Shown piece after piece: positions 10,277-64,000 of a stretch of DNA of 64,000 bases. How positions within the stretch are numbered: the stretch's first letter is position 1; every line of letters starts with the position of its first letter. Origin of the DNA: Takakia lepidozioides (taxonomy: Eukaryota; Plantae; Bryophyta); the NCBI GenBank assembly GCA_030704615.1, contig CM060731.1, positions 23,684,001-23,748,000 of the forward strand, read 5' to 3'. A model generated the notes under the pieces. The model did no database searches. It had not been told where the DNA came from and worked only from the letters and a program-made list of their open reading frames with translations. The translations under genes were made by a program, and so were the position numbers.

Positions 10277-13200
10277 ACATCGGGTGTATCAACCTAGAAA
10301 TATGGACACAAGCATCCTCCACCTACATACCCACAGTTATCAACTGCCTATACCCCAATCTCCACACTGCTCATTGCATGTGTAAAGCTAAACAGTATCC
10401 ATGGCATGACATAGATGGCTTCTCAATAGACAATAGAGGCTCCCCTATAGATTGTATCCTCGACCTTTTTACACACGACCTGTATGAATCATGTCTTAAA
10501 ACATTATCCAAATCTAAAGCCCCAGGCCCCGACCTGATACCCAACGCTATACTTCAAGCACTCGGCCCTCAACTCCATCACCTCCTTTTTAAATTTTTCT
10601 AGCTATGTTATAAACTACAACGCATACCACACACCTGGAAGCACAGTCGTACTATTCTACTCTTTAAAAAATGTGACCCAATGGATCTTAGCAACTACAG
10701 ACCCATAGCTCTAGCCAATACCAGATACAAATTATTTACCAGCACGCTAACCACAAATGTTGTCCAGCTATGGCGAACAACACCGCATCCTAAGTGACCC
10801 TCAAGAAGGCTTCTGAGCTACTCGTAGTACAACCTGACAAATACAATATGTACTATCCGCCCTTGAAGACACTAAACTTACAAAGCAAGATATATATCTT
10901 CTATATATCGATTTTAAAAACGCCTTTGGATCTCTAGACCACGCAAGACTACTCTCTATTATGACTGACCTTGGATACCCCATTGATGCCGTCCAACTCA
11001 TAGGAAACATCTACACTAATAGTACAACGGAGTACTCTGGAGCATATTATGGATCCACTCCACCTATTCCAATATTACGAGGCACTATCCAAGGAGACAC
11101 CTTAAGCCCCTATCTCTTTATTATCTTCTTGGAACCTCTACTCAGATGGCTAGCTCGTGGCAAGCTAGGCTATCAATACAAAACCTGCTCAAGCGACATC
11201 TCCGCCGTAGCATACGCAGATGACCTTGCTATTCTCGCACATAAACCGCAACATCTAAACCGACAAGTCACCAAATTATTCAGATTCAACCAATGGTCAA
11301 GCATGGAGCTAAGCCTACACAAATGTACTATCACAGCTGCCACACTTATAGCCAACTCACTAAAACCTCCATCGCTTCTCATTGTAAACTATATGTCCAT
11401 TACCAAAACAAACCCTTCCCCTTCCTAGGGCCGGATGAGCCATACACTTACCTAGGTATTCAATTATTACCTTCCCTCATTTGGCACATCGAGAAAGAAT
11501 CTACAACATCCAAACTCGTTAACAAAAGCTTGGCCCTACTCAAATCCCCAATTGTCATTCGTCCCAAATTATCAATTATTCAATCAGTTCTATAAACCCA
11601 AATTCAATACGCATTCCACGCTGCACCCTTCTCCTTACCAGATATCAAAAAACTTGATAAAAACATCATTCACCTTACCAAACGAGTATGCGGTTTACCA
11701 GTCAGTACCCCTAATGCCCTAACGCAACTCCCAACCGAAAGCTATGGAAATGGCTCCAGCCCATTAATTATTTCATATGTCGTGCACATACATATCGCTA
11801 CACAACTACATTGCTGTCCAAAACCACACAGCCTGCACAGTTGCAGTGTGGGCATTGTGGCAAGCACGGGCATGGAGAGGCCCAGTGTTATGGTTTGCAT
11901 CCTGAGTTGCGCCCAGGCCAGTTCCAAGGGAACAATGGTGGCCGGGGGCGAGGTGGAGCAGCCCAGAGAGGACGAGGTGGCCAGCCACGAGGTGCAGGCC
12001 AAGGGCAAGCTCAACATGGCCAAGGACGCGGAGGTCAAGGTGTTGACCAAGGCATGGCCAACCGGCTTCAGCAGCTAGTGCAGAGGCTTGCTACCATGGC
12101 TACAGCTCAGGTGGTACCGGCTCTAAGGCCGGATGGTCCACCTCCTGCTCCTGAGGGAGGAGATATGGGAGGCATGGAATTCATGTGTGGAGCAGCACTA
12201 CCACTAGTGCAGGTGGAGTCTGTTGCAGCCGTGACTCGAGGAGCAGCACGAGTTCCTGAGCCACGAGGTGCAGAGGTGGAGTTGGATCCACAGCGTGGGG
12301 AGGCAAGCTGTCAGGCTAGGCTTCCTCAGTCATTCACATTGGCGGAGAAAGTGTCGACGCCATCCATGGCACCTAGTTCTCGCCCGACGGTTGCCGAGGC
12401 GGAGGTTACTATGCCATTGGGGAGAGCTACACGGGTAGCACCACTACCTAGTGTTGCCAAGGCTGCGGCAGCTAGTGTGCTGCTAGGAGCGGCCACATTT
12501 GTGTGCCAGGCTCCATTGTTCTCGGCTACCATGATTGCGACGCTGGGGGTAAAAGCAGCTGAGGTGTTCAGGCTGGCAGCTACACTCTGTGAGAGTGGGG
12601 AGGTTACTTCATCTTCTGTGGAGATAGTGGGAGGTGTAGTGCCGGAGGGATCCTCGGATTTGAGGGTCAAGACTGCCACGGCGGCGCCATGGCAAGCTGC
12701 AGCTGCTAGGTTGATGGAGCTGCTAGCTAGGCCAGCCATTGAGCGCGCCATGGTGACACCTGGAGTTGTCATGTTAGACAACCAGGATGGCATTTTCTGT
12801 TTGAGTGGACCGGCAGGCAAGAGGTACCGGCCACTGCGGGTCTTGTTGGACTCGGGAACTCAGCCATTGATGCTGGGCAGAGCTGCTATTGCAGGCTTGG
12901 GCCTCACGGAGGCGGATATGGAGTCTTGTCCTTTCCAGATACAGACGTCTCTGGGAGGATCGGAGCAGGCTCGGGGCATGACATGGCATGACATGGCATG
13001 AGTTGGCTATCAGACTACGGCCGGATCACCCTACAGATGGCTCAATGATGCGAGCCAAGGCCATTGTGACAGATGAAGTCTCATACGATGTCCTGGTTGG
13101 TGGGGCAGTGTTGTACCCCATGGGCTTCACCTTGGATTTTTGGGAGGAGTCAGCTTCCTATAGGCCTGCATGGCAGTCAGGGGAGGGCCGGCGTGTGCAG

Positions 13201-13572
13201 CTCCCTGTGACATTCATAGGAGGAGTTGCGGTTGCCCAGTGAGGCAAGATGCCGACACTAGCAGCATTCACAGCGGCAGTGAGTTGGCCTAGAGAGTTGC
13301 TTGAGGGCAATGCTCATTCAGAGGATGTACCACCTCCGAGAGAGCAGGATGACATGTATGGTATGGCGGAGTTGCCTACCATGGTTGCTCAGACTCCATT
13401 GTGGGGCACGAGCAAGGATTTGCAGCGGGATGCTGATCGACGGGTGCAACAAGCTTGGGTGGAGGCTTTTGTACCGTCAGGAGAGGAGGAGAGTGTGGGG
13501 ATTGCACCAAGACCACCTCAATTGTCTCCATTGGACACCACACCTATTGTGTGGCAGTATCCGGATGAAGGC

Positions 13573-14500
13573 ATTTGTCTTCTGGACTTGTTTGGCGGGA
13601 TGTGTTACAAGCAGGTGTACGAGTTCGGCGTTACCTGTATGTGGAGAGGGATGAGACTGCACGACGCGTTTCACTTCGCCATGTTGCTCAGTTGGTGCAG
13701 CGGTACCCTGAGTTGTTGTCGGTATCTGCAATTCGTGGATATCAGCAGGCCTTGCCAGCAGACATTTCGTTGCTGGGGGCGCCGGATTTGGAGCGGGTTG
13801 GCTCCATTGATCTGGTAGTGGCAGGTTGGCCCTGCCAAGTGCATTCATCAGCCGGGCATGGCAATGGATTGCGAGACTCGAGGTTGGGTCTGTTTTGGGA
13901 GATGGTGCGGGTTTTGCGCCACTTGCAGCTTCATCAAGCTGTATCTCCAGCATACATCTTGGAGAATGTGCCACTGATGGGCGATTCTCGGACCAGGGTG
14001 ATGGCCAGTGTGCATCAAGTCCGGTCGTGGCTTGGGTCAGCAGTGTTGCTAGATGCAGCTACAGTGGGGTCACGGGCTCATCGTCCACGGCTATGGTGGA
14101 CTAACTTGATGCCACCCGCACTGCTCAAGCGTGCATTTGATGGGGTGCAGCGGCCAGCACATCTCACAGTGGATAACATTTTGGACACAGGGAGGCAGTC
14201 TCAGCGTGTGAGACACGATGACCGTTCGCCTTTGGCAGTGGTCAACAAGGTGGGTCAACCACGAGCAGCATTACCTACACTGCTCAGCTTCCCAGGATCG
14301 CATGTTTTCCGGGATAGTGGACCTGGCCTCCTGTGGGATGCTCAGTTGCAGCAGTTAGTGGAGCCTAATGCTGACGAGCGTGAGCGGGCAATGGGTTTTA
14401 TCACTGGTACCACGGCGGTGTCGTCTCTTTCTGAGGCATCACGTCATCAAGTGTTGGGGCAAGCAATGGATCTCAATTGCTTGACCTGGATTATCAGCTT
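13573..14500 (+). pseudogene. C5-cytosine DNA methyltransferase domain embedded in the Gypsy polyprotein between protease and RT
   Basis: Ordered motifs: I LLDLFGG (~13579, followed by a frameshifting deletion), II YLYVERD, IV DLVVAGWPCQ (catalytic PC 13830-13835), VI YILENV (13962-13970), VIII AHRPRLWW, IX ERERAMGF, X VLGQAMD (~14451-14471). Confidence 0.92.
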
Positions 14501-14927
14501 GGCTCTGGCTGAGCAACGCGGAGTGTGGAGTACACTTCCCTCAATGGTCTCTCTGCCTACCGAGACGGTACAAGCTGTGAGTGGGGGCGAGCATGTGAGG
14601 ACCACGGGGTGCATGCATCCATGGCACACGTGGGAGGTGCTCGACGTTCAGAGGGAGTTGGCAGCCAAGGCGGCTGTGATGGATGAGGTTGGGGATTCTT
14701 CTCGGGTTGAGGAGGTCCTCAAGGATGAGATGATGGGGCAGGATGAGGTCTTGTCATTGACTGAGCAGGCAGGGAGTACTGCTCAAGAGGTTGCAACATA
14801 GCAACCACTGGACGCGTCCTCTACCTCTAAGCCCACTGGACTTAAGGTTGCAGTTACGGAGGACAATTGGGAGCCTGACATTGGACCCATTGTCACCGGA
14901 GGAGAGAGACGACGTATACGGCGGTTC

Positions 14928-16310
14928 TTGAGGGCTTACAGGAATTGCTTTGCCTTCTGTTTGAAGGACTTGGGAGCACTGAAGGGTCAAGAGATCCGTA
15001 TTGAGTTGGCCACTGACACGCCAATCTTTCGGAGACCCTATAGATACAGTGACATGGAGAGGTCTTTGATTCAGATGAGGACTCAAGATCTCTGGGAGGC
15101 AGGTTTGGTGGAGCTCTCTGGTGGAGAGTATGCTTCAGCCACAGTGATGCCAGCCAAGAATGATGTCTATGGCAATTGGACGGAGAGACGTATGTGCGGT
15201 GATTACCGGCCTGTAAATTGTCAGACCAAGTCCGATAAGTATGCCATGCCAACACCAAAGGAGATCTTTGATGCCATCGGGCATGCTAAGGCCTTTAGCA
15301 CTTTGGATTTACGATCTGGATATCACCAGTTGCCAATCAAGGAGGCGGACAAGCAGAAGACGGCATTCTGGGGGATCAATGAGCACGACAAGGATTGCCT
15401 ATATCAGTGGCGGTTCTTACCATTTGGGCTTAAGAATGCTCCTGCAGAGTTTCAGAGAGTCATGGATAGGATTCTAGCAGGGGTGAACTTTGCTCGGTGC
15501 TACATAGATGACATCATCATCTTTAGTGTTACGATGGAGGAGCATGAGAGACACCTTCAGGTGGTATTGGAGCGCTTGAGAGCGCACGGATTGAAGTTGC
15601 ATCCGGGGAAGTGCAAGTTTTTCCACAACCAGATTGAGTATCTGGGTCACATGATATATCATGGAGGATTGGGGGTACAGCAGACTAAGGTAGAGGCCAT
15701 TGCACAAATTCCACGCCCCACGGATGTGAGCCGAGTTCGAGCTTTCATGGGGTTGGCAAACTATTATAGACGGTTTGTCAAGGGATTTAGTACCATTGCA
15801 AAGGCTCTAACCAAGCTGACCAAGGTGGACCAGGAGTGGCAGTGGGAAGATGAGCAAGAACGAGCTTTTCAAGAGCTCAAGGCGAGGTTGACCTCGGCAC
15901 CTATCTTGAGACGACCTATTAGGGGGCGTCCCTTTCAGCTGCATACGGATTGGAGCATGCTGGGGCTTGGAGCGGTGCTCACACAGGTGGATGATGAGGG
16001 AAGAGAGTTCGTAGTGGCTTACGCTAGCCGCTCGAACAACGCTGCAGAGGCCAAGTACAGCTCATATGAGGGAGAGTGCTTAGCTGCAGTGTGGGCCGTG
16101 GCACACTTCAGGTGCTATCTATACGGCAATCTTTTCACCCTTGTCACGGATCACCAGCCACTCAAGTGGTTGATGGAGTCAGACAAGCTTACGGGGAAGC
16201 TTGCACGGTGGGCACTTATACTCCAGGAGTATGACTTTCAGGTTGTGCATCGACCGGGTTTGGTCAATCGGGATGCGGATGGATTGAGTCGCAATCCATG
16301 CATGAGCTAG
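14928..16310 (+). CDS. pol: Gypsy reverse transcriptase + RNase H segment of pol
   Basis: ORF track 14928-16310 with canonical RT/RH motifs; bounded by internal in-frame TAG codons (14799-14801, 16308-16310). Confidence 0.95.
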   Translation: MRAYRNCFAFCLKDLGALKGQEIRIELATDTPIFRRPYRYSDMERSLIQMRTQDLWEAGLVELSGGEYASATVMPAKNDVYGNWTERRMCGDYRPVNCQTKSDKYAMPTPKEIFDAIGHAKAFSTLDLRSGYHQLPIKEADKQKTAFWGINEHDKDCLYQWRFLPFGLKNAPAEFQRVMDRILAGVNFARCYIDDIIIFSVTMEEHERHLQVVLERLRAHGLKLHPGKCKFFHNQIEYLGHMIYHGGLGVQQTKVEAIAQIPRPTDVSRVRAFMGLANYYRRFVKGFSTIAKALTKLTKVDQEWQWEDEQERAFQELKARLTSAPILRRPIRGRPFQLHTDWSMLGLGAVLTQVDDEGREFVVAYASRSNNAAEAKYSSYEGECLAAVWAVAHFRCYLYGNLFTLVTDHQPLKWLMESDKLTGKLARWALILQEYDFQVVHRPGLVNRDADGLSRNPCMS

Positions 16311-16355
16311 CAGGATGACACTGGAGCTCAGTGGCATGGTGAGACGGACGAGGAG

Positions 16356-17936
16356 ATGGTGCCGGGATGGCACGCATCTGCATTTTTGTGTATCTTGGCA
16401 TCGGGAGGTCAGATTGGACCTACAACAGGGATGACTGTAGACGGAGTGTCTGAGGACCCTGAGGCTAGTGATGAGCTAGATGGTGCCAGAGATATACATG
16501 AGGATTCGGCTGTGTTGGACTACCTCCGCACGGGAGACACGGCAGCCATTGTGACTGCCAGGGAGAGGGATCGGATCCTGCAACGAGCCAAGAGGTTCAA
16601 GTGGGAGGGGATACACCTACTTCGAGTGTGGGAGGATGGTTGGGTGAGGATTGTGCCTCACCCCACACAGCGTGCACGGTTAGTGCGGCATGCCCATGAG
16701 GAGTTGGGGCATTTTGGAGTGCGACGCACTCACAGTTTACTGCGGGGGCAGTATTGGTGGAGTGGTATGCATACAGAGGTGCAACAGTTCATGGCTAGGT
16801 GCATGGTGTGTGACAGGGTGCGTGCTTCATTCAACGCCTCTACACCACAGTTGCATCCTTTACCAATCATGGGATTGGGCTACAGGTGGAGTCTTGACTT
16901 CGTAGGACCGTTGCCACTGACTATGCGCCACCACATATATGTGTTGGTGATGGTGGAGCACTTCTCCAAGTGGATTGAGTTGGTTCCATTGCCTGACAAG
17001 GCTAGTGAGGGGGCTGCGTATGCATTCTTGGATCGTGTGCTTAGCCGATTTGGTGCTCCAGCTGAGGTACTCACGGACCAAGGGAGAGAGTTTTTGGGGG
17101 AGTTTCAGGCTTTGTGTGATAAAGCCTTGATAGACCACCGCACCACTTCTCGGGATCATCCTGAGGCCGATGGCGTAGCAGAGAGAGTTGTTCAGACGGT
17201 GAAGAGGGGTTTGCGCAAGTATGGCTTGCAGAAGGGACACCTAGGAGATTGGGATCTTCAGGTTCCTTGGTTAGCCATGGGCTACAGGTTCAGCAAACAA
17301 GCATCACTTGCCTCCTTCTCACCATATTTCCTTCTCTTTGGCCGAGAGCCGGATTTGCCTACAGCCATTCGTAGGGACACTGCTCAAGTCCTTGACCTTG
17401 ACGATCCGGGCGTGTGGGTACGTGCATGTGATCAGCGTGCAGAGTTGTTCAAGAAAGTCATGCCCATGGCTTTTGAGAACCTTGCCATTGCACAGCACCG
17501 TGATACGTTGAGGTATGCCACTATACGTGGTGGAGGATATCGTCCTAGGGTTCGGCGGTTTAGCCCTGGTGACTATGTTTATTTGCAGCAGACTGCTCCT
17601 ACGACTCTGGATGTTACTGCAGGGCGTGTTATTCTGAGGGTTCGAGAGGTGTTGCCCTCAGGGGTCCTGATCTTAGAGGGTCGGGATGGCATGACTTGGA
17701 AGGACCATGTGCGTAATTGTGCACCATGTCACCTTCCCAATGTCGATGGCAGAGTTGACCCAAACTTGGCAGTGGTACCTGCAGGTTTGAGGTGCATGCT
17801 CTGTGGGTCTGCCAAAGGGGCAGCCACCATGCTGGTGTGTGATCGATGCTCAAGGGGTTGGCATATGGGATGCTTGACACCACCTCTTGAGAAGGTACCT
17901 GACGGAGATTGGTTGTGTCCACACTGCTTGGGATAG
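16356..17936 (+). CDS. Gypsy integrase with C-terminal PHD finger
   Basis: HHCC and DDE core, then CMLC..MLVCDRCSRGWHMGCLTPPLEKVPDGDWLCPHC (C4HC3 PHD) directly before the stop. Confidence 0.93.
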   Translation: MVPGWHASAFLCILASGGQIGPTTGMTVDGVSEDPEASDELDGARDIHEDSAVLDYLRTGDTAAIVTARERDRILQRAKRFKWEGIHLLRVWEDGWVRIVPHPTQRARLVRHAHEELGHFGVRRTHSLLRGQYWWSGMHTEVQQFMARCMVCDRVRASFNASTPQLHPLPIMGLGYRWSLDFVGPLPLTMRHHIYVLVMVEHFSKWIELVPLPDKASEGAAYAFLDRVLSRFGAPAEVLTDQGREFLGEFQALCDKALIDHRTTSRDHPEADGVAERVVQTVKRGLRKYGLQKGHLGDWDLQVPWLAMGYRFSKQASLASFSPYFLLFGREPDLPTAIRRDTAQVLDLDDPGVWVRACDQRAELFKKVMPMAFENLAIAQHRDTLRYATIRGGGYRPRVRRFSPGDYVYLQQTAPTTLDVTAGRVILRVREVLPSGVLILEGRDGMTWKDHVRNCAPCHLPNVDGRVDPNLAVVPAGLRCMLCGSAKGAATMLVCDRCSRGWHMGCLTPPLEKVPDGDWLCPHCLG

Positions 17937-18196
17937 TGGCAGTGGACATGACTTGAGGCAGCTAACAAGACATGGGAGGCCAAGCTCATAGGAGTCAATA
18001 CATGAGATCCCAAGCTCAAGTTCACAGGTTGCAAGACGGCGACTAACGATGGGGCAACTCTTGCACCCGGCCTCTTGATCTATCGAGTTTGAGTGTAGTA
18101 GGGATAGTGGTGGAGGACTTAGTGAGGCTATGATCACTATCACATCTTGTGGCTACCTGGACTTAGAGGGACCTAAGCACCAGCTAGGGGGGCGAT

Positions 18197-18713
18197 TGTG
18201 TGGACTAGTGACTGCCATAGTGGGCAGCATAGTGGCAGCCTAGTGACTGACTAGTTGTAGCCTAGTGGTTGGACTAGTGGCTGGACTAGTGGTGGACTAG
18301 TGGTATACTAGTGTGTGGTGTGCACATGTGTTGTGTGGTTTTGGACAGCGATGTAGTTGTGTAGCGATATGTATGCACACGACAGCTGTCAAGTTATTTT
18401 GCCACTAGTGTGAAACTAGCTAGGAAATAGCTAGTTTTTACATATTGACATTTGGGATTGGCCCAAGTGTCAATCCAGGGGTCAAGGTAGATTTAGGCCC
18501 TGGAGTGGTTATCTTCACGGCAAGTGCGGGAGGCTCATCTTTCTCGAGTTGAGCCTCACCGCGCCTAGCTATGGCGCCGTAGTGTGGATTCCCCATGGCG
18601 TGGGGTGCACTTGGCTTGACTTGTATTTGAGTGATGAGGTTATATATGCATGAGTTTATGCTTCAGCTTTGTGAGCTCGCATGAGCTTGTGCTTGTATTC
18701 TTCTTCTTTATCA
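18197..18713 (+). repeat. LTR (517 bp, TG...CA) of the DNMT-Gypsy element
   Basis: Begins tgtgtgg right after the PPT and ends ttatca. Its first 189 bp are repeated at 18715-18903. Confidence 0.8.
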
Positions 18714-18714
18714 T

Positions 18715-18903
18715 TGTGTGGACTAGTGACTGCCATAGTGGGCAGCATAGTGGCAGCCTAGTGACTGACTAGTTGTAGCCTTGTGGTTGGACTAGTGGCT
18801 GGACTAGTGGTGGACTAGTGGTATACTAGTGTGTGGTGTGCACATGTGTTGTGTGGTTTTGGACAGCGATGTAGTTGTGTAGCGATATGTATGCGCACGA
18901 CAG
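18715..18903 (+). repeat. Second, truncated head-to-tail LTR copy (first 189 bp)
   Basis: Near-identical to 18197-18385; separated from the first LTR end by a single T. Confidence 0.9.
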
Positions 18904-19578
18904 AAGCATCGGATTCCCTCTCGCGTGACTGTTACACATAGTCGTTCCCTTATTAGTGCACATGCCAGCAATTGGTGTACAGCTGTTCGTATTCAGTTAT
19001 AGATGTCTCACGTGTGTCGCCCAAAATAAACGGCGTGTTCTTTATTAGAACGGTTTCAATATTTAAAAATAACAGCGAATCCCAGAAATCTTGGCGCACA
19101 GTCTTACACAAATAAATGTAAATGAACAAGAGTTTGATGACAAATCTTGGAATATCATACACGGTCATCCTTGTTAGCCAAACCCCACATTCGTTTCACA
19201 TTTGGAACTTTCCAGGTGCGCATGATCATTGGTAGTAGTATAAAGATACATTTACTTTATTTGCAATCCCATCCTCAGATCCTGTGGCATGCTTCCAGGA
19301 AGTCAGCTTTGTTATTGGGTTTATTGATGAGGTTCTGGTTAACGGTTTAACAGCTGCCGACACTGCTCCTAGGGATACTCTGACCACTGGGCCCACAAGA
19401 AAAGTAATTAAAATGGACGGCTACATATCTGTTAAGAATAACATAATATGCACAGTCGTTGTCTGAGCTTCCTCCGCCATATTCTCTGCTCATTCTTCAA
19501 CTGTGTTCTGGAGACATCAGTAAACCGATTTACACTAGATCTGCGATAGCAAGGTACAAACATACGCGAGGAAGGAAG

Positions 19579-50258: not shown

Positions 50259-52089
50259 TTACATTGCTGTACCTGAAGAAAATGACAAAAACAGTGAAAA
50301 TTGGTGACCAAACAACCACAGTCAAGATCCACCCTTAATCACTGTCCTAGACGAAAGAAGAATGCTGGAGGGGGATGACCACAAAGTTTTAAGTTGCCTA
50401 CAGTGTTTAAATGGACACCTATGCGGAGATGAAGCAACACAAATCCCTATTGATGGAAGCCTGCCTAGAAGGTTCACCAGGAGTGTCCAGGGCAGTCACT
50501 ACCCAGGGTTCTAATATGGTCCCTAAAACTAATATTGCATTTCTTAGATGTCTCCAATTGGAGTAAAAACCATATCCTGCCATCAGGGCGATGAGCATTC
50601 AACTGGACCCTCCCTGATAATTACTGAGGAAATCATTGCAAATGAACTTCAGGCTCAGCCACATTGAGATATTTAGCTTCTTGCCATCCCAGAGAGGACA
50701 AGAGAGGTGTACCAGATTCACGGGGAGCGCTGCACCGGTAGCATTCCATGCGGCTTGCAAAGTTGTGCTCATTGCAACCAGATCTGCTTTCTTACAAGAC
50801 AAATCCAGTTAGTTACAGCAATCGCCAAAATTAAGGCTTGCTTAGGTGCTCCAGTGTCATTATTCTTACCTCCACAACAGGTGGAAGAAGATCCTTGGTC
50901 TTAAATATCCTTGGTCTTATGTGACAAAAACCCGAAAAGCATTAAGTGGCCATAGAGAATTTCATTGATAGCCAGCAAACCATGAAAGCGACACTCTAAA
51001 ATCGTCTGGAACAATTCGACAGAGATCCAATGCCAATTTTCACTACCCCAAGGGTAAACCAGCTTTACTGTCCACAAGTGAAGCCCTTGCCCAGAACCCC
51101 TACATTCATCTTCACACTACAACAGAGAAAATCCATCATTCATGCTCAAACAAATTGCAGTTCCAAACTTTAAGGGGACACAATTTAAGACACCAAGACA
51201 AGGTATAACTACACTTTGAATTGGATGCCTCCCCATCTGAATACAATATCACACTAATGGCCACCCTCAACCCTAGCTGTGACTGGGGTTGCCAGAGTTT
51301 TGAAGTAATTCTGTGATTCTATTCCTGTTGGAGATGAAAGACTTCTACATACATGCTAGAAAGCAAGTAGTTGGCTACTTTTGCCTGAACAAGCATGTAA
51401 CTAGACTCCTAATATGTGTCAGACATTGCTGTGGTTCTCGGGTAGGAGAAGTGGGCAAGAGGGTCAAGGAGAGCATAAACGAACGACAAGGGAAACAAAC
51501 ATTTTCACCTGCCGCATATCCAATCACCAGACTTCCATCCTTGACGAGCACCGCCACCGCCACCGCCACTTCCACCTGCATTGTACGATGAGCCAAATCC
51601 GAAGTTCCCTCGAGACCCTCGGCCTGTGCTTCCCGTAGAATCGTAGCCTGGCGGCAACCCCCCTCCAGAACTCAAACCTTCGTCCTTGAATGCCCCACAC
51701 TTGAAACAGTTGTTCCTACTTGCGAAATTGTGAGCCCCGCAGCCAGAGGCCGGGCAGTACCAATCACCGGGTCTGACGCCCGTGTCTGAACCTCCCCCAA
51801 ACCCTCCGAAGTTGCCACCATAGCTGCGCCCGCCGTAATCTCCCCCGGAACCTCCACCTCCTCCCCCGCTGCTGTAGCTTGATCCAAAGCCATATGATCC
51901 TCCACCACCACCACCTCCTCCTCCTCCACCACCTCCTCCTCTGTTGTAACTAGAGTAGTCACCCCCCTCTGAACGGCCTCCAGACCCACCGCCTGGCCTT
52001 GCATCACTGCAGCGTTGACATGAGTCACGCCTGCTGAAGTTCAAATGCTGGCAGGAGGGACAGTTCCAGTCTCCAGGTTTTCGGTTCAT
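50259..52089 (-). CDS. Glycine-rich protein with three RanBP2-type zinc fingers; exons 52089-51509, 50783-50713, 50272-50259
   Basis: GDWNCPSCQHLNFSRRDSCQRC, GDWYCPASGCGAHNFASRNNCFKC, and GDWICGR|SGCNEHNFASRMECYRC across a GT-AG intron. Confidence 0.9.
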
Positions 52090-55000
52090 GCTTGTCTTCG
52101 CCTTCACTCAGGTGACAATGCCTGCACCGCTGTTCTACAGCTTTTCGGAACACGAAATATGCAGGCAGCCCCTGACCAAAACAACAGCTGTAGTGGTACG
52201 CTGATGCACCCCAACCAAAATTCCACGGCAGCAGGCCCCTGAGAGCAAAGAAGTGTGAGTAACAACTTCGATCACAGAACTTTCCGGGAAAATTGCTGCA
52301 CCAACCCTTCAGAAATGCTAAGTGTGTACGAAGACTAAGTACCAAGTACCAAGTACCAAGTGTACGTAACATTGCCACCAATCTGACAGAGATACCTGTC
52401 ACAGTCTCTCTGTTTCTATCCGTCAATCACGGCAAACAACTATTTTAATTAAGCCACACCACAACACAATATATGCTCTTCTCCCTACGATACGAAGATA
52501 CACGCCACAGACGCGCACACGCAATGCAATGCTTCACCAAATTTCTGCTGCAATGCAGACTCAAAGATCTCTTGGAGCGCGATACTAATCAATGTCTCTT
52601 GTCTCCAGGAAGTTTTACAATCTGTATCATGAAATGCCAACTCTAATGCATTGTCCACAACTCGATTCCCGCTATTCCCCACAAACAGACAAGAAGCAAC
52701 AAATGACCACCTCATAACCAGCTCCAAATTTACGAGGCTTGGCCAATACCTACATCCAAACTGTACGCTTCTCCCACACAGCACACCACAAATGAACACC
52801 TCAAACTTACCCGAACAGAAAAAAAACGCGCTTCCAACTAATCTTGCAACCAGGTCACCAAACTTCTCACAACTTCACAAAAAAAATAGATTCTACCACA
52901 AAAAACGCATCAATCCCTCTTCCACAACACAACAAGGATTGCAATTGTGTACCAGAAATGCAGCGCAGATCCGATGGCGCGCGAGAGTGTACAAAGAAAT
53001 CGCTAGCGAGAGCTCCCTGGCTCGCAAAGAAGTGATGGTGGTGACTAGTAACTAGTAACTAGGGTTATCCCCCCCTACTCACTTAGTCAGCTTGCGGACC
53101 GTTGTCTCTTCTGTTCATATGTTCCGCACGCGCAGATGCCATCCCCCACCAACGCTTCCTCGTCGATGAAAACCGTCCATGTCCCTAATCCCAGCCCTAA
53201 TCACCACTCTAATTGGGTTTGTGAGCCGGGGTTATCCCCGCTTAGCAGTGCTGGCCTAAGACGGTGGATGTTCATCCATCCTGGTCGGTGGACACGGTTA
53301 GTTATCCACACGGTAGGCAGGCGGGGTGGTGATTGGCCGGGTGTGGCCCACGCATTTATCTGCGGTGGGTCCGGCAAATAGCAGCACGCCACAGCGGCTT
53401 TATCCGCTCCACGCGATTATCTCGCTGCTTTGCGTTGGGCCCTCGTCATAGTGTCGGTGGAAATACGTGGGTGCTAAATCCCATAGCCTTTACACTGCCT
53501 TACACTAGAGACAAAAACTTGTTCACGTCCTCCATTATGAATGCCAAGTTTTGTTCAACTTCCGCCTTTTGAGGTTTGCGATCCATGCCTAAGGGTTTCC
53601 AACTTTTTTCTTTTCAGCCTTTTTTTTTTTTTTAAAGAACAGGGGGATAGTAGCCCTGGAAATTTTTATTAAGGTCAGGAAAAAATAACCTTACAATGGC
53701 CATAAGGCTGAGAACAGAGCTGGCACACAGAGCGGGGCGGAAGGGAGAAGAGAACCTGCGAGGGTAACAAGGCAGAGACAAATACTGCCAAGAACAGAGA
53801 AAAACAGCCCAAAATATATAAAGGAAACTAGGGAGCGCCAGCCCACAATTCAGGCCCTTGAGGAGGGGGGAAAGTTAACCCCCTTTCATTTATGGCCTAT
53901 GGAGACCTACAGGACGATCGATGCCGAGACAAACCGTCACGAACAATCCCACACACGGGCAGGCTGCGGGTTTTTTCTTTTTTCTTTTTTCTTGAGAATA
54001 TTTTCCACATTTTATTATGAGAGGGGAAAAAGGTAAACCCCTGTGGGGCCATAAGGCAAACACACCTGACGGTGAGGGACGAACCCAGGGTATTTTTTTT
54101 ATTTTTTATTTTTTAATTATGTGAGGGGAAAAATAAGCCCATGTGGGGCCATAATGCAAACACACCTGACGGTGACGACGAACCCAGAGTACTTTTAACG
54201 GAGGGAAAACCATCCCAGAGGATGAGGTGGAATGCAACGATTAAGAACAACAGCTAGGAGACGGCCAAGAACGAATCTAGAGCTCACGAGATGCAAGCTC
54301 CAAACTGAGGGCAAGGGTATGCCTACTAGCCCTGACATATTCCTACCACTGCGATCAATGAGAGGAGTAGCCTATAAATGAACGTGCAGTTAGAACAAAG
54401 AAGCCAGGATCGGCTTGAGAGAAGAAAGCAGTGGAAAGAATAGTTGTGAGCGATCCACATCAAACAGGGATTGGAGCCTGAGAGAGAAAAAAATAAAGAG
54501 AACACTAGAGTGAAGCGAACTTGGAGACAGAGAAAAAGGAGAATGGAACAACAAATGGCGTTGGAGGTCGCTACTTGCCGAAGCTAAGCCGAGTCGAGTT
54601 TCTGCCATTGATGTGTTTCCAATTAATTTCCCTGTCGAACTCCGGTGAGTCATGGTAGTGCAGTGATTGCCCCTTGTCAGGAGTTTGGTGGGCTTCTGGC
54701 CCAGAGACAGATTGCCGACGAAGAGCAGCTACATATGATGTTGTCTTTCCCCCAAGAGCATTTGGCAAAACTTTTTGTCAAATGGTAGCCTTGTTAGCTT
54801 CCATGTGCAAATTTGGGATTTGAACACGGTGGACCTTGTATTTGGTTTGATACTGGTTATTGGTAGCTCAAAGGAAACACATACTTTGGCTTCAATATTG
54901 TGTTATTTGGAAAAGAATTGATATGTATGGAAGACCAAAATAAAAATGTAGTAGTTCTTTGTAGTTAGACTGCCATTGTGTGCATTACAATTATCAGTTC

Positions 55001-55606: not shown

Positions 55607-56921
55607 CTACAAGAAGATCATCTTATGCTTATGAGTGCGGAGTGTAAGGATTAGTTTTGCACTTGTATGTTAAAGAGGTTGAGAGCTAGGAGAATTTAGC
55701 TCTTGTATCACAAGGCTTGCAAGGGGTTGCAAGGAAGGGTGCTTTGGTGTTGCATGCACCAAGGAGTTGGAGAGCTTAAGAAGAGAGCTCTTGAGTCACA
55801 AGATTTTGCAAAAAGATGAAGTTTTATGTGTGTGGAAGCATATATTCTAGGATTTGATAATCTTTTGTATACATTACGGAGTCAATGGTGTGTGCCATGG
55901 CTTGTGGAGAGTGACTAAAGGCTTGTTAGTGCTCATTTCACTATCAAGCTAGGGTTAAGCAAGTTCAAAGTGTGGATGTTGTGGAAGAGAAGCCAAGGAG
56001 CTACATATGCTTGGGCTTGAAGACAACAAGGGCAAGCACTTGGAGAGCACTAAGAAGCTCAAGAGGTTTTGAAAGGGAGCAAATGAATAAATCTTTCAAT
56101 CATGGTGATGTGGAGCCAAGCTTAAGGCGCCATTAGAAGGGCTTGGAGAACATATGGTGGGAAATCCTAGAAGGGAAATCATCATTCAATGTATGCATAG
56201 CTTCACCCTAACTATGTAATGTGACAAGAGGGGGAGGCAATACTTGGCTATTCATGCTCTTGGTAGTGCGAGCTTTGTGGTGGATAGTTGACCAAGCAAG
56301 TGGTGCATGTGTGGAGCATGCTCTCTTGAGTTTGTAAGTTCAAGTTTGAGAATGGGAGCTCTTGAACTAGCAAGAGATGAAGGCCTTGAGATCCATTTAC
56401 AAGTGTGTGAAGTGGAGAGGTGTTGATTCATGTTATGATGAAGGAGAGCCACACATAGGCCAAGAGGTCATGGAACATGCATTCAAATGACCAAGGGGAG
56501 CACATGGATGATGGATTGGTGCAAGACCCCAAATGAGGCATATGGCGTGAGAGTAGGATCCAAGGCGGATTGTTTGGGAGCATTATTGTAAGTGACAAAC
56601 ATTGCTCCTACACAATGAGATAATTTGTGTTGATTTGGAGCAATTGTCAAGTGATGAGGAGACAAATGCACGATTGCTTGGCAATAGAGATATGGTAGTT
56701 TGCAATCAAATCCCAAGGACTAAAAGGGGGATTGACTTGGTGGACAATGACTTGCAAGTTGAGTTGGACCACTCTTGGTTGCATATTGGGGTGGAAGAGA
56801 GCAAGAAGATGCCTCTTACGACCACCTAGAGACCATATTTTTGCTTGAGTAGAAGCATAGAAGTCAAGGACTTGCATTCTAGCTCTTCATTACAAACCCT
56901 AGTAGTGTATGCTCAGATACA

Positions 56922-57303
56922 TCTGTTAGTATATCAAACAGGAGCTTGTCCCTTTTACTATACCTCTTTTGAGGTATCACCATATGTGAACCCTAATCAG
57001 CTCAGACTGTACCTCTGTTAATATACCAAACAGGAGCTTGTCCCTTTTACTATACCTCTGTTGAGGTATCACCATATGTGAACCCTAATCAGCTCAGACT
57101 ATACCTCTATTAGTATACCGAACAAGAGCTTGTCCCTTTTACTATACCTCTGTTGGGTATCACCATATGTGGACCCTAATCAGCTCAGACTGTACCTCTG
57201 TTAGTATACCAAACAGAACCCTCATTTTCAGACTATACCTCTGTAAAGGTATCACCAACATAAGGGACCCTAGCAACCTCAGACTATACCTCTGTTAAGG
57301 TAT
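56922..57303 (+). repeat. ~92-bp tandem repeat (about 4 units)
   Basis: Units start at 56922, 57014, 57106 and 57197; each has an atacct-N5/6-aggtat mini-hairpin. Confidence 0.9.
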
Positions 57304-58490: not shown

Positions 58491-58658
58491 AGCTCCGCTC
58501 GTCGTCTCTCATGACCAGACTCGATCCTAAAACAAAACAAACATAGCTCCGCCCTGTTCGACGTCTCTCATGATCAGACTCGACACTAAAAGAAAGCAAA
58601 CACAGCTCCGTCCTGATTGTCGTCTCTCATGATCAAACTTGACACAAAGAAAACAAAC
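58491..58658 (+). repeat. ~55-60-bp tandem repeat x3
   Basis: agctccg...cgtctctcatga(c/t)ca(g/a)act(c/t)ga...aaac repeated three times. Confidence 0.85.
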
Positions 58659-60764
58659 AGATGGTAGGGGAGACAAAAAAACGCTAAGTCCCCTCTACTC
58701 ATGACTGGATGGATGAGAAGACATTACCTTTATCATGGTAATTCCACTGTGGAGCGATTGAGTTAAGAATCTAAGATCGTTATTTTTAAGATATGAGCCA
58801 GGCATGAGTCCAGGGAATTCTTAGGGAACCAGGGAACAGGGAACCAAGACAAATTATTGAGAATAGATTTTCCCTTGTATTTTTTTTATTTTTTTTAAAA
58901 AGGGTGTTATGTTTAAAGAGCCTGGTTGGTCATATCTTTGTCAAATGAGCTCCGTTTGACGCAGTTTTTGGGGGGATAGCTGCAGAAAGGGGATCTGACC
59001 AAAAATCTATAGAATTTTTCTAATGTAAATTAGATCCTCGATAGATGGATGGATTTTGGGTTTTCCATCAATACATCCATCCATTCATTTGTTTTTCCAT
59101 TTTTTGGCCATTTTAATTATCCATTCATCCAAAATAAATCTTTAAATGAGTTTCACTATCAGTTCATCCAATTGTTGTCAGCTCAGCATTTGCATTATCA
59201 TTCGTTCATACGTTCATCCAGTGCACAAAAGTTATGTTTGATACGTTCATCCAATAGTTGCCAGCAAGGCATTTGTGTATCATTCGTTGAGATAATACAG
59301 TTGTTTTGTTTCACTAACCTTAACCAGCAGTCGATTAGTTTTACTGTTAATCTGCTGGGTCAATGAAACAGTAGTTAAATATTTTTATTACTTATTATCC
59401 TCATACTTAACGCAACCTAACAACCCTAAATTCGAGCACATTCATCCTAATTCATCCTAATCATTCATTCATCCACTCATTCATTCACAGGGTGTGGCTT
59501 AGTGCCCGCGAGCAATGATATGTTGACACATCGTCATTTGCAATCACATCCTGCATATGTTTCATCCATTTATGTTTGCATCGTCCACGTAGACACTCCT
59601 TGGGCAACCGGCAATCGCCACGTGCAGTTGTGAATACTGGCAGTCATACATTCCCATGCCCACGTCATCCTGCTGCAGTTTTGGCCATGACTCCTAGTCG
59701 TATCTACCATCTTCCCCTATCTGGTCAAACGTGTTTGACCGCAGATCCTGACGTGGCGGAGGTACAAGGTGGCATATACGACTTCTGTTGGTCACAAATG
59801 GCAACTAGGACTGCCCCCTTGCACTTTGTAGACATATATGCTACAACTGGGCAAATGTGGCAGACGTTAAAGCCGGAATATGTTAATGCGATCCATCAGC
59901 AGGTCACGGGGGCGCGCTCCCAGCTCGCTCAAACAGCAACAAAAAACAAAACGACATAGAAGAGGGAGAGAGAGAGTGAGGGAGAGGGATTAGGGCGAGA
60001 GGGAGAGTGAAAGAGAGGGCACGCGCGGGTTTGAACGCCGTGGCGCATCAGTGTTGCGTCACCACCGCCGGAAAACGCTCCGGCGCACGGGGGTAGTTGC
60101 GTCCGGGAGAGCTCGAGAGCAAAAACAAAACAAAGTAGGGATGGAGGGAGGGGAGGGAGGAAGAGTGACAGGAGGAGGGTGAGGGAGAGAGAGATCAGAT
60201 AGAGAGATTGAGAGGGGGAGTGAGAGGCGGTCGGTGCAGCTGCGGCGCGCCAGTGTGACGACCCCACCGGAAAACCTCGGCGGCGATCAGGCGCCTTCGC
60301 GAAGGGGAGAGAGAAGGGGAGAGAAGGGCGGCCACCTTGGCAGGAGGAGGATCCGCTGCGACGTTGGGGAATCGCACGAGCGTCGCTGCCTCAGGGGGAC
60401 GTCGCACGGCAGTTGCAGATCTGGCGCAAAGGTGAGTTAAAGAGGCATCTCATTTTTTATTTTATTTTTTTGGTTTTTTGGGTTATGGGGTTTTGCAAGG
60501 ATCATTTGGGTTTTTGGGTCTTTGGCTCTTAGGGTTTTAAGGGTTACATAGTTTAGTTTAGGGTTAGTTATAATATAGTTAGTTTAGGATTAGCTGCAAT
60601 ATAGTTTTGTTTTTAGGGTTTTGTTTTTTGGTGGGGTGGGGACATATGGCTTTACGTTTGTAGGGTTTTTTTTTTCAAGTTTTTCCAAGGGTTGGGAGTG
60701 TAACTCCTCCGGAGGTTACAGTGGGTCACAAATACAGTACTCTACCTCTTTCTCGTGCTAGGTC

Positions 60765-62564
60765 ATGCCGCATGTTTATCGACGTGTCACGCTTGAGGAT
60801 TCGTTGCCGGCTGTGCCACAACCACCTGCTGAGGGCGAGACAGCACGTTCGCCTAGGCGGCATCGCCATGTCCGCACAGCTTTGCCCCCACGGCCACCAC
60901 CCCGAGGTTGTAGGCCACCAAGTCCAGAGGCACGAGCCCCGGGGAGACCCCGCCGGGACCGCCTCCCCAAGATTGAGTGTTGGTACAGTTGGTGTTGGGC
61001 ACGACTACCGGTTGGGCGGACCACACCGATGATGCGGCGACCCCATGTTGTGCAAAAACATTACGCCAAGTACGAGATTGCTGATGCAACAAAGGTAAGT
61101 CGTCCATATATCTTCTCACGTACTCCTCAATTAAAAGTACTATATCTAATGAAACCTCACGTTTGTGAATTGAGTATTGATGCATTTCATATCATGCATC
61201 TTGCAGCCCCCGTCTTGATGTCCAAGCTCGCAATTTTTTTGCTGAAGAGGCATACCGATGCGGGTTTCTTTCTTCTTACGAGCCCCACCCCGTTCCGGAT
61301 GTGAACATTTTTTTCTCGCAACATGACGTAGATGCAGTTTGTGAGGTAGCGGGGTATGATGCGTGTTTTTCTATTTTTGGGCACCGGGCTAGGCGCTTGT
61401 CACCTACGCACACACATTCGTCATCCCCGACATCGGCACCCCCATCATCACCATCATCCGCATCGTCTGTTCCTCCTATTGTAGATGGTCTTTCCTCATC
61501 ACCATTGCCATCCAAGGTTCCTCATACCGACCGGCTACGTGTCCCTTCCCCTCCATTGCCGAAACCACAGCCGCCACCGAGTCCGAGTTTGACATCCTCG
61601 ACATGGGCACCCCCATCATCACCATCATCCGCATCGTCCGTTCCTCCTATTGTACATGTTCTTTCCTCATCACCATCCCCATCCCGGCCATCTCGGCCAG
61701 TACTACCTCCACGCAAGATCCCTCATACCAACCTACATTTCCCTTCCCCTCCATTGCCGAGACCACAGCCGCCACCGAGTCCGTATCCGGGTCCTCCGGC
61801 AGAACCCAGATGGATCCCACCACCTTTGGGGACTGTGTATGACTGGGACCGATGGATCACTAGGTTCCCACTCCGGGAGAAGGGCCCCCGAAGGTGATGG
61901 ACGGGCGCCGCCCCCTAGGAGAGGTGGACCGAAGTTGTTTCGCACGGTTGGTCCGCGCCTTCGCCGGCCTGATGACGGCACCATACATCATCGTGGTGCT
62001 AGAGCTATTCACGATGGGAGTCCAACCCCATTTCTACCAATGTCTTGTGCCTTGTCCAGTTCCGATTCCCGAGGGTGAGCCCTTTTTTTTTTTGGGTCGC
62101 ATGTATTGCGTGATGGAGGCAATGGACTATAGTATGGGTCGCGGACTTTTCTTTATGGAGGATGTAGTTTTGAGGGGAGGAGAGGATTCTGTGGATTTGT
62201 TCCCCTATTTTGGGCCGAGGTACACCCACCGGGAGTGGCAATTATTGCAGATACACGGCCTTGGGTCCTTGATCCATCCTTACATCCTTGTTGTGAACGA
62301 CAATGATGTAAGGGCAAGAAATTTGGGCCGCAAAGCCCATATTTATTGTGACGGAAACCCCGATGTGTATGGCAACGTGGCTGGGCTCATCAACAGTTCA
62401 GTTACCTTACCGCCGGGCCACACCGCCAACGTGTTTTGGGATGAGCGCCATGACGGGGATAGTAGATTGGACCCTAACATTACCACTTTTGTGATGACAT
62501 GTGTGCAAGGAGGACTATTAGGGCTGGAGAGGAGTTGTTTGCAGAGTATGACTTTAGGCGTTAG
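60765..62564 (+). pseudogene. Proline-rich + SET-domain (lysine methyltransferase-like) gene upstream of the CACTA transposase; 5' exon structure uncertain
   Basis: MGRGLF (62134), LFPYFG, YCDG..YGNVAGLINSS..ANV; after a TG-duplication frameshift near 62500, CARRTIRAGEELFAEYDFRR* (stop 62562-62564). The Pro-rich region contains a ~175-bp duplication (~61420-61780). Confidence 0.75.
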
Positions 62565-62929
62565 CCGACTTTCATCATGTGTAAATGGACGTAGGAAGAC
62601 ATTTTGTACATTGAGGTGGCTTCCTCCACCGTGTATATATATACATAGGCATTGATGTGTATTTGGATGCAGTTTTTCATGCTATATTGAAGAGAGTTTG
62701 GGTGGACGTTATATGTGAATTTGGGTATTTTGAATTATATAGTGTCTCCTTCATGTGGTGAAGCAATGTATGTATTCCCCTCGTGTGTATAATGTGTACT
62801 TTGGGTTTTATCTTGTATGATAATGAACAACGCCATGTATGGAAACTGATAATGACATGGTTGTTTTTGGCATCTTAGGATGCCGGCCATAACCCCACGA
62901 CGTTAATTCATGAAGTTCATGATCTTGTC

Positions 62930-64000
62930 ATGAACCGGGATTTTGTTCCTTCGAAGGGGGGGGGGGGGGGGGGGGGACAAAAGGACCCGGCCCCGTCTGA
63001 AATGGCGGTCTCCGATGATGAGGATAACAATGACAATGGAATTATGCATGAGGATGTGGCAGCAATGGAGGACCTCTTAATGCATCAGATGGTAGATGAG
63101 GACACAGACTCTTTGAATGACATGGAAAAAGAAGCCAAAACTCCCTTATATGAAGGGGCCAAAGTGAGTAGACTTTCAACCATCTTATTGTTGCTGAATT
63201 TGCAAATCTGGTTTGGCATAAGCAATGTGGGTATGTCCGCCATAATGCGGACTATTGCAGACTACATCCTTGCCCCACATTCGAAACCGAAAATGCCACG
63301 ATCAAGAAAAGAGGCAAGAGCAGCCTTGGATGCTGTGGGGATGGGCTATAAGATTTTTCATGCATGTCCATGTGATAAAACCCTGTACTACGGAGAGGAT
63401 GCGAAACTCACCAAGTGTCCAAAGTGCAACAAAGACCTATATCGGGATGATGTTCAAGGGAAGAAAGCCCTGCGCAAGGTATACCCGCGCCACAATACAC
63501 TTGTATATTGCATTCTACCTTTTTGCAACCGCTGCAAGACGTAAGGTTTTACTTAGAGATATGAATGACACTGATTATGATATGGGGCCGACATGGGGAT
63601 GGTGCCAGAAAATGCACTACTTTCCAATCATCTCGCGACTGCAGGCACACTATCGAAGCCCCTCATTGGCAGAACTGATGAGATGGCACGCCTCGCATCG
63701 GAGCCCCCCGGGAAAGGTGTGCGGGCCACAAGATTCACAAGCATGGAGGCATACTGAAGAGATGTGGCCTTTTCTCTTGGAGGACCCATGACATGTCCGC
63801 CTCGGCTTCTCCTCGGATGGGGTCAACCCATTCTCTGTCCAGTCATGTAGTCATTCCACTTGGCCGGTGACCATGGTGAATTACAACATCCCTCCGTATC
63901 TTTCAATAAAAAAATGCCATATCATATTGGCTGCCATTGTACCGGGTGAGTGTTCCCATTTCATGCTTATTATTACTTTGGATTTTACATTAATTTTCTT
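62930..64000 (+). mobile_element. CACTA/EnSpm TnpD (Transposase_21-type) transposase, decayed, runs off the window end
   Basis: TPLYEG, IFHACP, CPKC, YFPIISRLQ, LMRWH, DSQAW, DP*HVRLGFSSDGVNPF, STWPV, YNIPP. Confidence 0.93.

Follow-up and report, generated by a model that had tools for sequence, protein, structure and literature searches.

Putative chromatin-related cargo in a nest of transposable elements from a probable streptophyte genome

Overview of the locus

We analyzed a stretch of 64,000 nucleotides (GenBank assembly GCA_030704615.1, contig CM060731.1, positions 23,684,001 to 23,748,000 of the forward strand; hereafter the window). Its principal features are a multi-exon gene that joins a ParB-fold exon to methyltransferase-like exons and lies beside a large transposase gene, a Gypsy-type retroelement with a C5 cytosine DNA methyltransferase (DNMT) and a PHD finger, and two stretches read as one decayed long interspersed nuclear element (LINE), the second of which carries a chromodomain and a PCIF1-like domain (Table 1). 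The region is quite probably a nest of transposable elements in a streptophyte genome, with three elements from lineages that bear chromatin-related cargo. CpG dinucleotides are depleted nearly throughout the window (observed/expected 0.36-0.63), the exceptions being a chromovirus (0.9) and the region of a CACTA transposase (0.76). This general depletion is consistent with widespread CG methylation in the genome.

Pfam was applied to every open reading frame (ORF) of the window of at least 150 aa and, in two bulk scans of 18.9-64 kb, to every ORF running from stop to stop with at least 55-64 aa. Exons were searched singly, and the naturally uninterrupted homologs L001:9872-11131 and P0177 were used in place of a joined product of the ParB-methyltransferase gene. 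An Rfam search of the entire window gave no match.

Table 1. Features of the window, with positions counted from its first nucleotide.
Feature	Position	Strand	Evidence
5' part of a decayed LINE	7800-11777	+	Weak APE start 8575-8841; reverse transcriptase (RT) fragment 10838-11425
Gypsy-type retroelement with DIRS-like repeats; gag, Dnmt3-like DNMT, RT-RNase H, integrase-PHD	11778-18902	+	Pfam; repeats
Dnmt3-like C5 cytosine methyltransferase domain, in two reading frames	13243-14798	+	PF00145; solved relatives; motifs
RT and RNase H	14802-16307	+	RVT_1 E 7e-33; RT_RNaseH E 4e-36
Integrase (zinc-binding and core domains) with C-terminal PHD at ~17793-17927	16311-17933	+	Pfam
Large DDE-type transposase gene with SWIM-like C-terminus	19447-23084	+	Weak SWIM; homologs beside ParB genes
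Three degenerate copies of a 22-nt palindrome, upstream of the ParB exon	23988-24430		Pattern scan
Exon with ParB/sulfiredoxin-fold domain, motif F.VWDGNHRL.AW	24474-25103	+	Homologs; AlphaFold2; Foldseek
Middle exons of the ParB-methyltransferase gene	25177-25326, 25453-26151	+	Collinear in L001, L002 and at least 10 more loci
Seven copies of the palindrome TGAATGKCGTTGACGMCATTCA inside the ParB-methyltransferase gene	26295-27008		Pattern and exact-arm scans
Beta-class (CcrM-like) methyltransferase-like exons	27113-29030	+	Family profile; NCBIfam
LINE ORF with a P/T/H-rich linker and a chromodomain (~30489-30629)	29628-30836	+	Chromo E 2.4e-5
PCIF1-like (DIRS-methyltransferase-like) domain, probably non-catalytic	30715-31821	+	PCIF1_WW E 9e-4
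RNase H domain, 3' end of the LINE	31619-32431	+	PF00075 E 1.2e-8
Decayed chromovirus-like long terminal repeat (LTR) retrotransposon	32532-39365	+	LTRs 32532-33140 and 38846-39365; Pfam domains
ORF taken for a SET domain, unconfirmed	61864-62652	+	Loose motif resemblance only
CACTA (En/Spm) transposase gene, running off the window end	62879-64000	+	Transposase_21

The ParB-methyltransferase gene and its transposase partner

The ParB-methyltransferase gene occupies 24474-29030. Its six exon ORFs (24474-25103, 25177-25326, 25453-26151, 27113-27832, 27898-28395, and 28542-29030) are collinear in at least 12 loci elsewhere, and gene models of Adiantum ferns fuse the ParB part with the methyltransferase-like parts. 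Because of this collinearity across loci and the fusion in the Adiantum models, the exons of the window probably form a single gene.

Pfam gave no match, to PF01555 or otherwise, for the ORFs of the ParB and methyltransferase exons or for ten long homologs, and sequence searches of solved structures (phmmer and profile) with the ParB exon and the ParB family gave none either. In a library of 1.84 billion proteins, the ParB exon matched 524 cluster representatives at E <= 1e-3. Its AlphaFold2 model, built on an alignment of 48 homologs, reached a mean confidence score (pLDDT) of 88, and the best 34 matches of that model in a Foldseek search of the PDB were all ParB, Noc, KorB, sulfiredoxin or SbnI, with modest scores (best E 0.014, probability 0.99, TM-score 0.33-0.57). 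The ParB/sulfiredoxin fold predicted for this exon is thus supported at the level of modelled structure.

For the methyltransferase-like part, a search with the uninterrupted 420-aa homolog L001:9872-11131 retrieved 26 relatives, all of which lack a Pfam domain. A family profile that includes the window exons matched CcrM (6pbd; E 5e-4 over 200 residues) and DpnA (E 0.07), and the NCBIfam model of CcrM matches the C-terminus of the homolog P0177 (E 3.6e-4). The order of motifs is that of the beta class, with the motif IV region followed by a PWRG..EK stretch, which aligns to hPTQKP of CcrM, and then by motif I. The last of these lies in 28542-29030, where it is split by an intron, and is conserved in the family.

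Upstream of this gene, the transposase gene is interrupted by two in-frame stops and one frame change. Its match to SWIM (PF04434, E 0.0058) scores 16.6 bits against a cut-off of 19.6, with a CxC...CxH pattern visible, and no other Pfam profile, MULE and Transposase_mut included, matched 19447-23084 at E <= 10. An earlier reading of the window from its sequence alone (hereafter the sequence-only reading) had assigned a beta-class amino-methyltransferase and a ParB domain to a Mutator-like element (MULE). Both domains were recovered by methods deeper than Pfam, but the element type was not: with only the weak SWIM signal (E 0.006) and no profile match, MULE-like stays an unverified call at the level of motifs.

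Relatives of the cargo gene were found in Adiantum ferns and on metagenome contigs from JGI, ENA, and Logan, among which we take the JGI contigs, from their identifiers, to be moss or peat samples. We fetched 80 metagenome loci with a ParB domain. Of these, 13 extend at least 5 kb upstream; in nine of the 13, homologs of the window transposase lie 1-8 kb from the ParB exon, and the nine represent about six distinct families (loci L029, L041, L046, L050, L057, L060/61, and L068/70/71). The transposase stands on the strand opposite to the ParB gene in the metagenome loci and on the same strand in the window. The co-occurrence of cargo and transposase, which the sequence-only reading had proposed to check across copies, thus recurs in other loci. 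That reading would have fallen had the cargo occurred only in single copies without purifying selection; the ParB-methyltransferase unit recurs across sequence clusters that number in the hundreds.

No stop interrupts the ParB exon in 35 of 79 loci. Among the stop-free copies, the ratio of nonsynonymous to synonymous substitution rates (dN/dS) has a median of 0.105 and is below 0.5 in every comparison (40 non-independent pairs with dS of 0.05-1.5). Judged from these ratios, the ParB exon is under strong purifying selection.

The gene also carries an array of short palindromes. Six of the seven copies of TGAATGKCGTTGACGMCATTCA fit a degenerate pattern exactly and the seventh (26522) came from the exact-arm scan, against a chance expectation of none; the array probably lies in an intron. 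Locus L001 has the same layout with another palindrome, ATGGTCGG-N2-CCGACCAT, in ~18 copies. Directly upstream of the ParB exon, L011 has 10 copies of GAGGTGCC-N6-GGCACCTC, and L064-67 have three copies of TGAAGAAC-N4-GTTCTTCA. In these four families, each palindrome is distinct and the position is equivalent. Such family-specific palindromes are what a cognate pair of ParB and site would give.

Two related loci show other arrangements. In L001, repeats at 3253-3581 and 14585-14946 (91% identical) bound the ParB-methyltransferase gene together with dense subterminal short repeats, and this 11.3-kb unit may be a non-autonomous or different carrier element. In L088 (7360-11173), the neighbours of another methyltransferase-like gene from this family are a 519-aa ORF and a DUF7869 protein (E 1e-39).

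Accessory genes of comparable design have been described in algae. The Sola1-1 element of Ectocarpus encodes a 1104-aa accessory protein with ParB and N4C/N6A methyltransferase domains on the strand opposite to the transposase (PMC12477816). Red-algal Plavaka, Mutator, and Zisupton elements carry PAG2 (N6A methyltransferase and SET) and PAG3 (ParB and 2-oxoglutarate (2OG) oxygenase), with inverted-repeat arrays beside PAG3 (bioRxiv 10.1101/2025.02.11.637652). A Dam family fused to ParB and helix-turn-helix domains is known from chlorophytes and chytrids (PMC4738411). The window gene resembles the algal accessory proteins in uniting ParB with a DNA amino-methyltransferase-like domain in one protein of a large DNA transposon, in the inverted-repeat arrays beside the gene, and, in most related loci, in its orientation opposite to the transposase. 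It differs from them in its streptophyte hosts (Adiantum ferns, moss/peat metagenomes), in its SWIM-type transposase partner, and in a motif IV of the form D-[I/L]-P-[E/D]. The red-algal pairing is also unlike that of the window gene, since there ParB is joined to a 2OG oxygenase and SET is the partner of the methyltransferase. The chlorophyte ParB-Dam proteins belong to the M.EcoKI/TaqI-like group, whereas the window domain resembles CcrM and DpnA.

A Gypsy element with a Dnmt3-like methyltransferase and a PHD finger

The claim that a C5 DNMT and a PHD finger reside in a Gypsy element was confirmed. PF00145 (DNA_methylase) matches the ORF at 13569-14798 (E 1.9e-11), and the best solved relatives are DNMT3A (E 1.9e-6), DNMT3B, and DNMT3C, all ahead of M.HhaI. 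The motifs FGG, PCQ, ENV, RPR, and GQAMD are visible in the window copy. Besides the matches of the RT and RNase H, the integrase ORF matches Integrase_H2C2 (E 1e-15) and rve (E 8e-15), and the PHD finger (E 1.9e-10; 41 bits, cut-off 24) shows a complete C4HC3 pattern. The element is bounded by a 53-nt inverted terminal repeat, with the copy at 11778-11830 paired with those at 18332-18384 and 18850-18902; both 3' copies are contained in a 191-nt direct repeat (18195-18385 and 18713-18903).

The window copy is dead. Comparison with the intact relative L087 (ENA ERZ25039475 contig_837) places a short frameshifting deletion near 13600, just past the FGG of motif I; further frame breaks lie at ~12990 and ~13240, and a second in-frame stop at 16308. 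In L087, a single intact ORF of 1360 aa (L087:1-3677) encodes a zinc knuckle, an aspartic protease, and the DNMT. This DNMT, the only relative obtained, is 50% identical to that of the window, too diverged for dN/dS, and keeps FGGIG (motif I intact), PCQ, ENV, and RPR.

The DNMT and RT ORFs of the window share a frame and are separated by a single stop codon (14799-14801). Because the ORF of L087 ends within a few residues of the equivalent position, this stop is probably the native boundary between gag-protease-DNMT and pol and not a product of decay. The DNMT would then close the first ORF, with pol probably expressed by readthrough of the native stop.

In these respects, the window element is a member of the published Gypsy-Dnmt3 kind. 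KnitGypsy-Dnmt3 of Klebsormidium nitens combines DIRS-like repeats with Gypsy-like domains (de Mendoza et al. 2018, PMC5890265), and the two share a Dnmt3-like DNMT within the Gypsy coding region, a DIRS-like repeat layout in place of plain LTRs, and key DNMT motifs that are retained in intact members. As differences, the DNMT here is the last domain of a gag-protease-DNMT ORF that terminates ahead of the RT, the window copy is dead, and the host species may differ; furthermore, the text of PMC5890265 does not mention a PHD at the C-terminus of the integrase. Fusions of PHD fingers with transposons in general have been published (Grau-Bove et al., bioRxiv 2021.11.30.470311), and chromoviruses and other transposon-reader fusions likewise bear the reader at the integrase C-terminus, the position of the PHD in the window element (bioRxiv 2021.11.30.470311). 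In the literature examined, we found no report of a PHD finger and a DNMT combined in one Gypsy element.

In L087 (1-11400), the Gypsy-DNMT element again adjoins a ParB-methyltransferase unit, whose ParB half it seems to have severed; the arrangement at 11778-29030 of the window is mirrored there. This adjacency could have arisen by chance, or because the PHD-bearing integrase prefers such sites for insertion.

A candidate LINE with a chromodomain and a PCIF1-like domain

In the upstream stretch of the LINE, the endonuclease match is weak (Exo_endo_phos, E 0.0026) and the RT matches RVT_1 (E 6e-15); the best solved relatives of the RT fragment are R2 and LINE-1 ORF2p, which identifies it as LINE-type. 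In the downstream stretch, the chromodomain (PF00385) scores 24.6 bits against a cut-off of 25.1, and its counterpart in the homolog P0197 scores 36.6 bits. The chromodomain, the PCIF1-like domain, and the RNase H of the window occupy three overlapping frames. P0197, the sole homolog (contig L089, from a second genome), has the chromodomain and the PCIF1-like domain in one ORF. Where PCIF1 has NPPF, the window copy and P0197 have AHPPS or AHPPN (AHPPS in the window). The sequence-only reading had described a PCIF1-like fold and a chromodomain in a LINE; the LINE-type RT, the near-threshold chromodomain, and the recurrence of the module in P0197 uphold it in part, but the PCIF1 assignment itself is sub-threshold.

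The PCIF1-derived methyltransferase domain of DIRS1 elements has been reported as degenerate and likely inactive (Iyer et al. 2016, PMC4738411). A preprint describes the movement of adenine-methyltransferase (DAM) domains out of DIRS and into LTR elements, together with "EpiLTRs" in which DAM, DNMT, and chromodomains are united (bioRxiv 10.64898/2026.05.21.726589). Like the PCIF1-type domain of DIRS1, the window domain belongs to a retroelement polyprotein and has a degenerate catalytic motif; like the DAM-chromovirus elements, it pairs a methyltransferase-like domain with a chromodomain. Unlike its possible counterparts in DIRS1, DAM-DIRS, and DAM-LTR elements, it lies in what appears to be a LINE ORF2, between RT and RNase H, and the window order is chromodomain, methyltransferase, RNase H and not RT, RNase H, methyltransferase as in the DIRS1 and DAM elements. 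No report of a chromodomain-methyltransferase module in a LINE was found in the literature examined.

Other elements and host genes

The LTR element at 32532-39365 has LTR pairs that are 86-94% identical and enclose gag, protease, RT, RNase H, and an integrase with SH3_Tf2-1. A chromodomain had been claimed for this element under the name "Tcn1". The decayed chromovirus-like element is there, but the chromodomain is a remnant seen by eye: a frameshift-broken stretch at ~38040-38200, after the integrase SH3, to which Pfam Chromo gives no match. Its position is that of the chromodomain on the Ty3/Gypsy integrase of chromoviruses. The element is an ordinary decayed chromovirus and adds nothing new.

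At the end of the window, Transposase_21 (tnp2) matches the ORF at 63792-63998 (E 6.3e-17), which identifies the CACTA transposase. Just upstream of the ORF that had been taken for a SET domain, duplicated units of 97 nt and 51 nt (61417-61783) encode a proline/serine-rich repeat in an ORF within a stretch of 54% GC. Upstream of the CACTA region, otherwise unannotated DNA contains a 92-nt tandem repeat (four units, 56917-57246) and a 59-nt tandem repeat (three units, 58492-58668).

Two host genes lie amid the transposons. Exons of a pectinesterase gene occupy 47149-48228 (+), with the carrot and tomato enzymes as best solved relatives; this host gene is the best clue to a plant-lineage genome. 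The ORF at 51508-52107 (-) encodes two RanBP2-type zinc fingers with long glycine-rich runs between them and is probably a host gene for an RNA-binding protein. Finally, a 95-nt repeat ending in a CT run occurs in three copies (40159-40253, 40754-40848, and 44847-44941), with nearby fragments that resemble the neighbourhood of the LTR element; it is probably another decayed repeat family.

Interpretation and alternative explanations

Starting from the domains, repeats, linkage, and selection observed, we infer the following activities. The large SWIM-type transposase would be accompanied by one multi-exon gene for a protein with a ParB fold and a CcrM-like, beta-class methyltransferase-like domain. 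The ParB domain would bind the family-specific palindrome arrays of its own element and so bring the methyltransferase domain onto that element, where it would deposit N6-methyladenine (6mA) or N4-methylcytosine (4mC) or act without catalysis, the latter being possible because motif IV is non-canonical. In the Gypsy element, the first ORF would encode gag, protease, and the Dnmt3-like DNMT, followed past the in-frame stop by RT-RNase H and the integrase ending in the PHD. The PHD finger would tether integration to a histone H3 state, and the DNMT would methylate cytosines of the element's own DNA or complementary DNA. In the LINE, the RT of ORF2 would be followed by a chromodomain, a PCIF1/DIRS-type pseudo-methyltransferase, and RNase H, with targeting guided by the chromodomain and the PCIF1-like domain serving as a binding module and not as an enzyme.

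In its widest form, this reading credits plant-lineage transposons (in ferns, mosses, and relatives) with a self-addressed marking system: ParB reads a palindrome array specific to its family and brings a variant CcrM-like methyltransferase onto that element alone, giving a private 6mA/4mC mark or a protein coat that counters host silencing. The same genomes would hold Gypsy elements with Dnmt3 and a PHD-guided integrase, and LINEs with a chromodomain and a DIRS-type module. We put it forward tentatively and regard it, taken whole, as unlikely.

A series of observations counts against the main reading, that of three elements with chromatin-related cargo and the activities inferred for them. 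The motif IV position of the beta-class family reads D-[I/L]-P-[E/D], with no aromatic residue, where DPPY is expected, and the AlphaFold2 model of the methyltransferase-like protein P0177 reaches a pLDDT of only 43. The methyltransferase part of L087 and L088 has no ParB exon within reach (in L088, none within 10 kb), and this module may spread on its own as well. Comparison of 18.9-19.6 kb or 11.0-11.8 kb with 28.9-29.9 kb revealed neither terminal inverted repeats nor a target-site duplication of ~9 bp, the transposase copies in the metagenome loci all contain stops, and no transposase was found near the ParB gene in L001, L002, L028, L048, or L065/67. As for the LINE, PCIF1_WW (PF12237) scores 19.3 bits in the window and 24.5 bits in P0197 (E 2.3e-5), below the gathering score of 31.1; neither the PCIF1-like ORF nor a two-sequence profile matched a solved structure; and strand composition and a possible 8-nt duplication appear to be the only ties between the two LINE halves.

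The alternative that survives best is that the methyltransferase-like domains are pseudoenzymes or relics, used as binding modules or not at all, and that no transposon-encoded methylation takes place. The window motif IV is DIPDG (in 27898-28395), only the Adiantum protein P0048 has DVPFG, and the family consensus departs from the canonical tetrapeptide (D/N/S)PP(Y/F/W); catalysis by the beta-class domain is uncertain because motif IV lacks an aromatic residue. The two known copies of the LINE domain have AHPP(S/N) instead of NPPF, the literature calls the methyltransferase domains of DIRS1 likely inactive (PMC4738411), the published yeast assay of KnitGypsy-Dnmt3 was inconclusive, and the window DNMT is frameshifted. 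Against a general loss of function stand the D and P of motif IV, which are at least 90% conserved, the conservation of motif I across the beta-class family, the strong purifying selection on the ParB exon, and the intact DNMT of L087 with its FGGIG, PCQ, ENV, and RPR. On this evidence, we hold the pseudoenzyme explanation to be somewhat doubtful. The same points bear on the suggestion of the sequence-only reading that the elements encode a methylation toolkit: the general idea has been published before, but the PCIF1-like and beta-class domains lack canonical catalytic residues and the window DNMT is broken.

The SET domain claimed beside the CACTA transposase fared differently, as the transposase stood and the SET did not: the ORF at 61864-62652 gave no match in Pfam (E <= 10), NCBIfam, solved structures, or searches for homologs. 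It might nevertheless be a real SET domain, very divergent or decayed, carried by the CACTA element in the manner of the SET accessory genes of red-algal Plavaka and Harbinger. Stretches of the ORF loosely recall SET motifs (G-R-G-L-F..., ...G-N-V-A-G-L-I-N-S-S...), the transposase gene follows it on the same strand after ~230 bp, and SET accessory genes of CACTA-type and Harbinger elements have been published. Given the uniformly negative searches, we consider a SET identity doubtful.

The two LINE stretches are separated by 17.9 kb of other elements, and no reading frame can be traced across the putative join. The chromodomain, PCIF1-like domain, and RNase H (29.5-32.5 kb) could therefore come from a separate retroelement, DIRS-like or other, and not from the LINE that supplied the RT at 10.8-11.4 kb, the more so as PCIF1-type methyltransferase domains are a hallmark of DIRS1 (PMC4738411). 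The stretches at 8-12 kb and 28-34 kb, however, lie on the same strand and have in common an unusual C-rich strand, with a GC skew of -0.19 to -0.35 at the LINE 5' part, that is absent from the DNA between them; because this strong negative skew is common to both, we interpret the two as a single LINE that nested insertions have divided. An RNase H of the PF00075 type after the RT fits plant-type LINEs, and no tyrosine recombinase or second RT lies nearby. In addition, an 8-nt match, ATTTCATA (11770-11777 and 29653-29660), flanks the 17.9-kb block of nested elements and could be the target-site duplication of the inserted block, or chance. A separate retroelement thus appears unlikely, and a single, interrupted LINE is the reading we retain.

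Least likely, and in our view quite improbable, is that the ParB-methyltransferase gene is a host gene or an independently mobile gene that merely adjoins the transposase. In its favor, no termini enclosing both genes were found, the transposase is missing from several loci that have the gene, the 11.3-kb unit of L001 is bounded by direct repeats of its own (255-330 nt) and has no transposase, and the two genes share a strand in the window but occupy opposite strands in the metagenome loci. Against it, one transposase family recurs within 1-8 kb in nine of the 13 informative loci from about six families, the hundreds of diverged and often decayed copies fit a mobile element, and published genes of this kind lie inside Sola1, Plavaka, Mutator, and Zisupton, often opposite to the transposase strand.

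Significance

That transposons can encode chromatin writers and readers of their own is a theme of recent work, which began with descriptions from a few algae and protists. Epigenetic toolkits encoded by transposons are, as a general idea, already in print, and nothing is overturned here. The sequence-only reading had counted four methyltransferase classes plus histone readers among the transposable elements; at least three element families with modules that recur elsewhere were upheld, but four is an overcount, with the SET domain unsupported. Its view that these modules were captured repeatedly within one lineage did not hold, as they look like old and widely spread transposon lineages, for which earlier descriptions exist from Klebsormidium, from green, red, and brown algae, and from DIRS elements.

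What is new lies in the particulars. The ParB-methyltransferase accessory gene is now placed in the streptophyte lineage, with relatives in ferns and in moss/peat metagenomes, and comparative evidence is added in the form of an array of palindromes for each ParB that differs by family and of measured, strong purifying selection on the ParB exon. The joining of a PHD finger to the Gypsy-Dnmt3 type is also new, and so is a likely LINE version of the chromodomain plus PCIF1-type module, suggested by the window and the related loci. If true, the ParB-methyltransferase system would provide a compact, testable case of sequence-addressed epigenetic marking.

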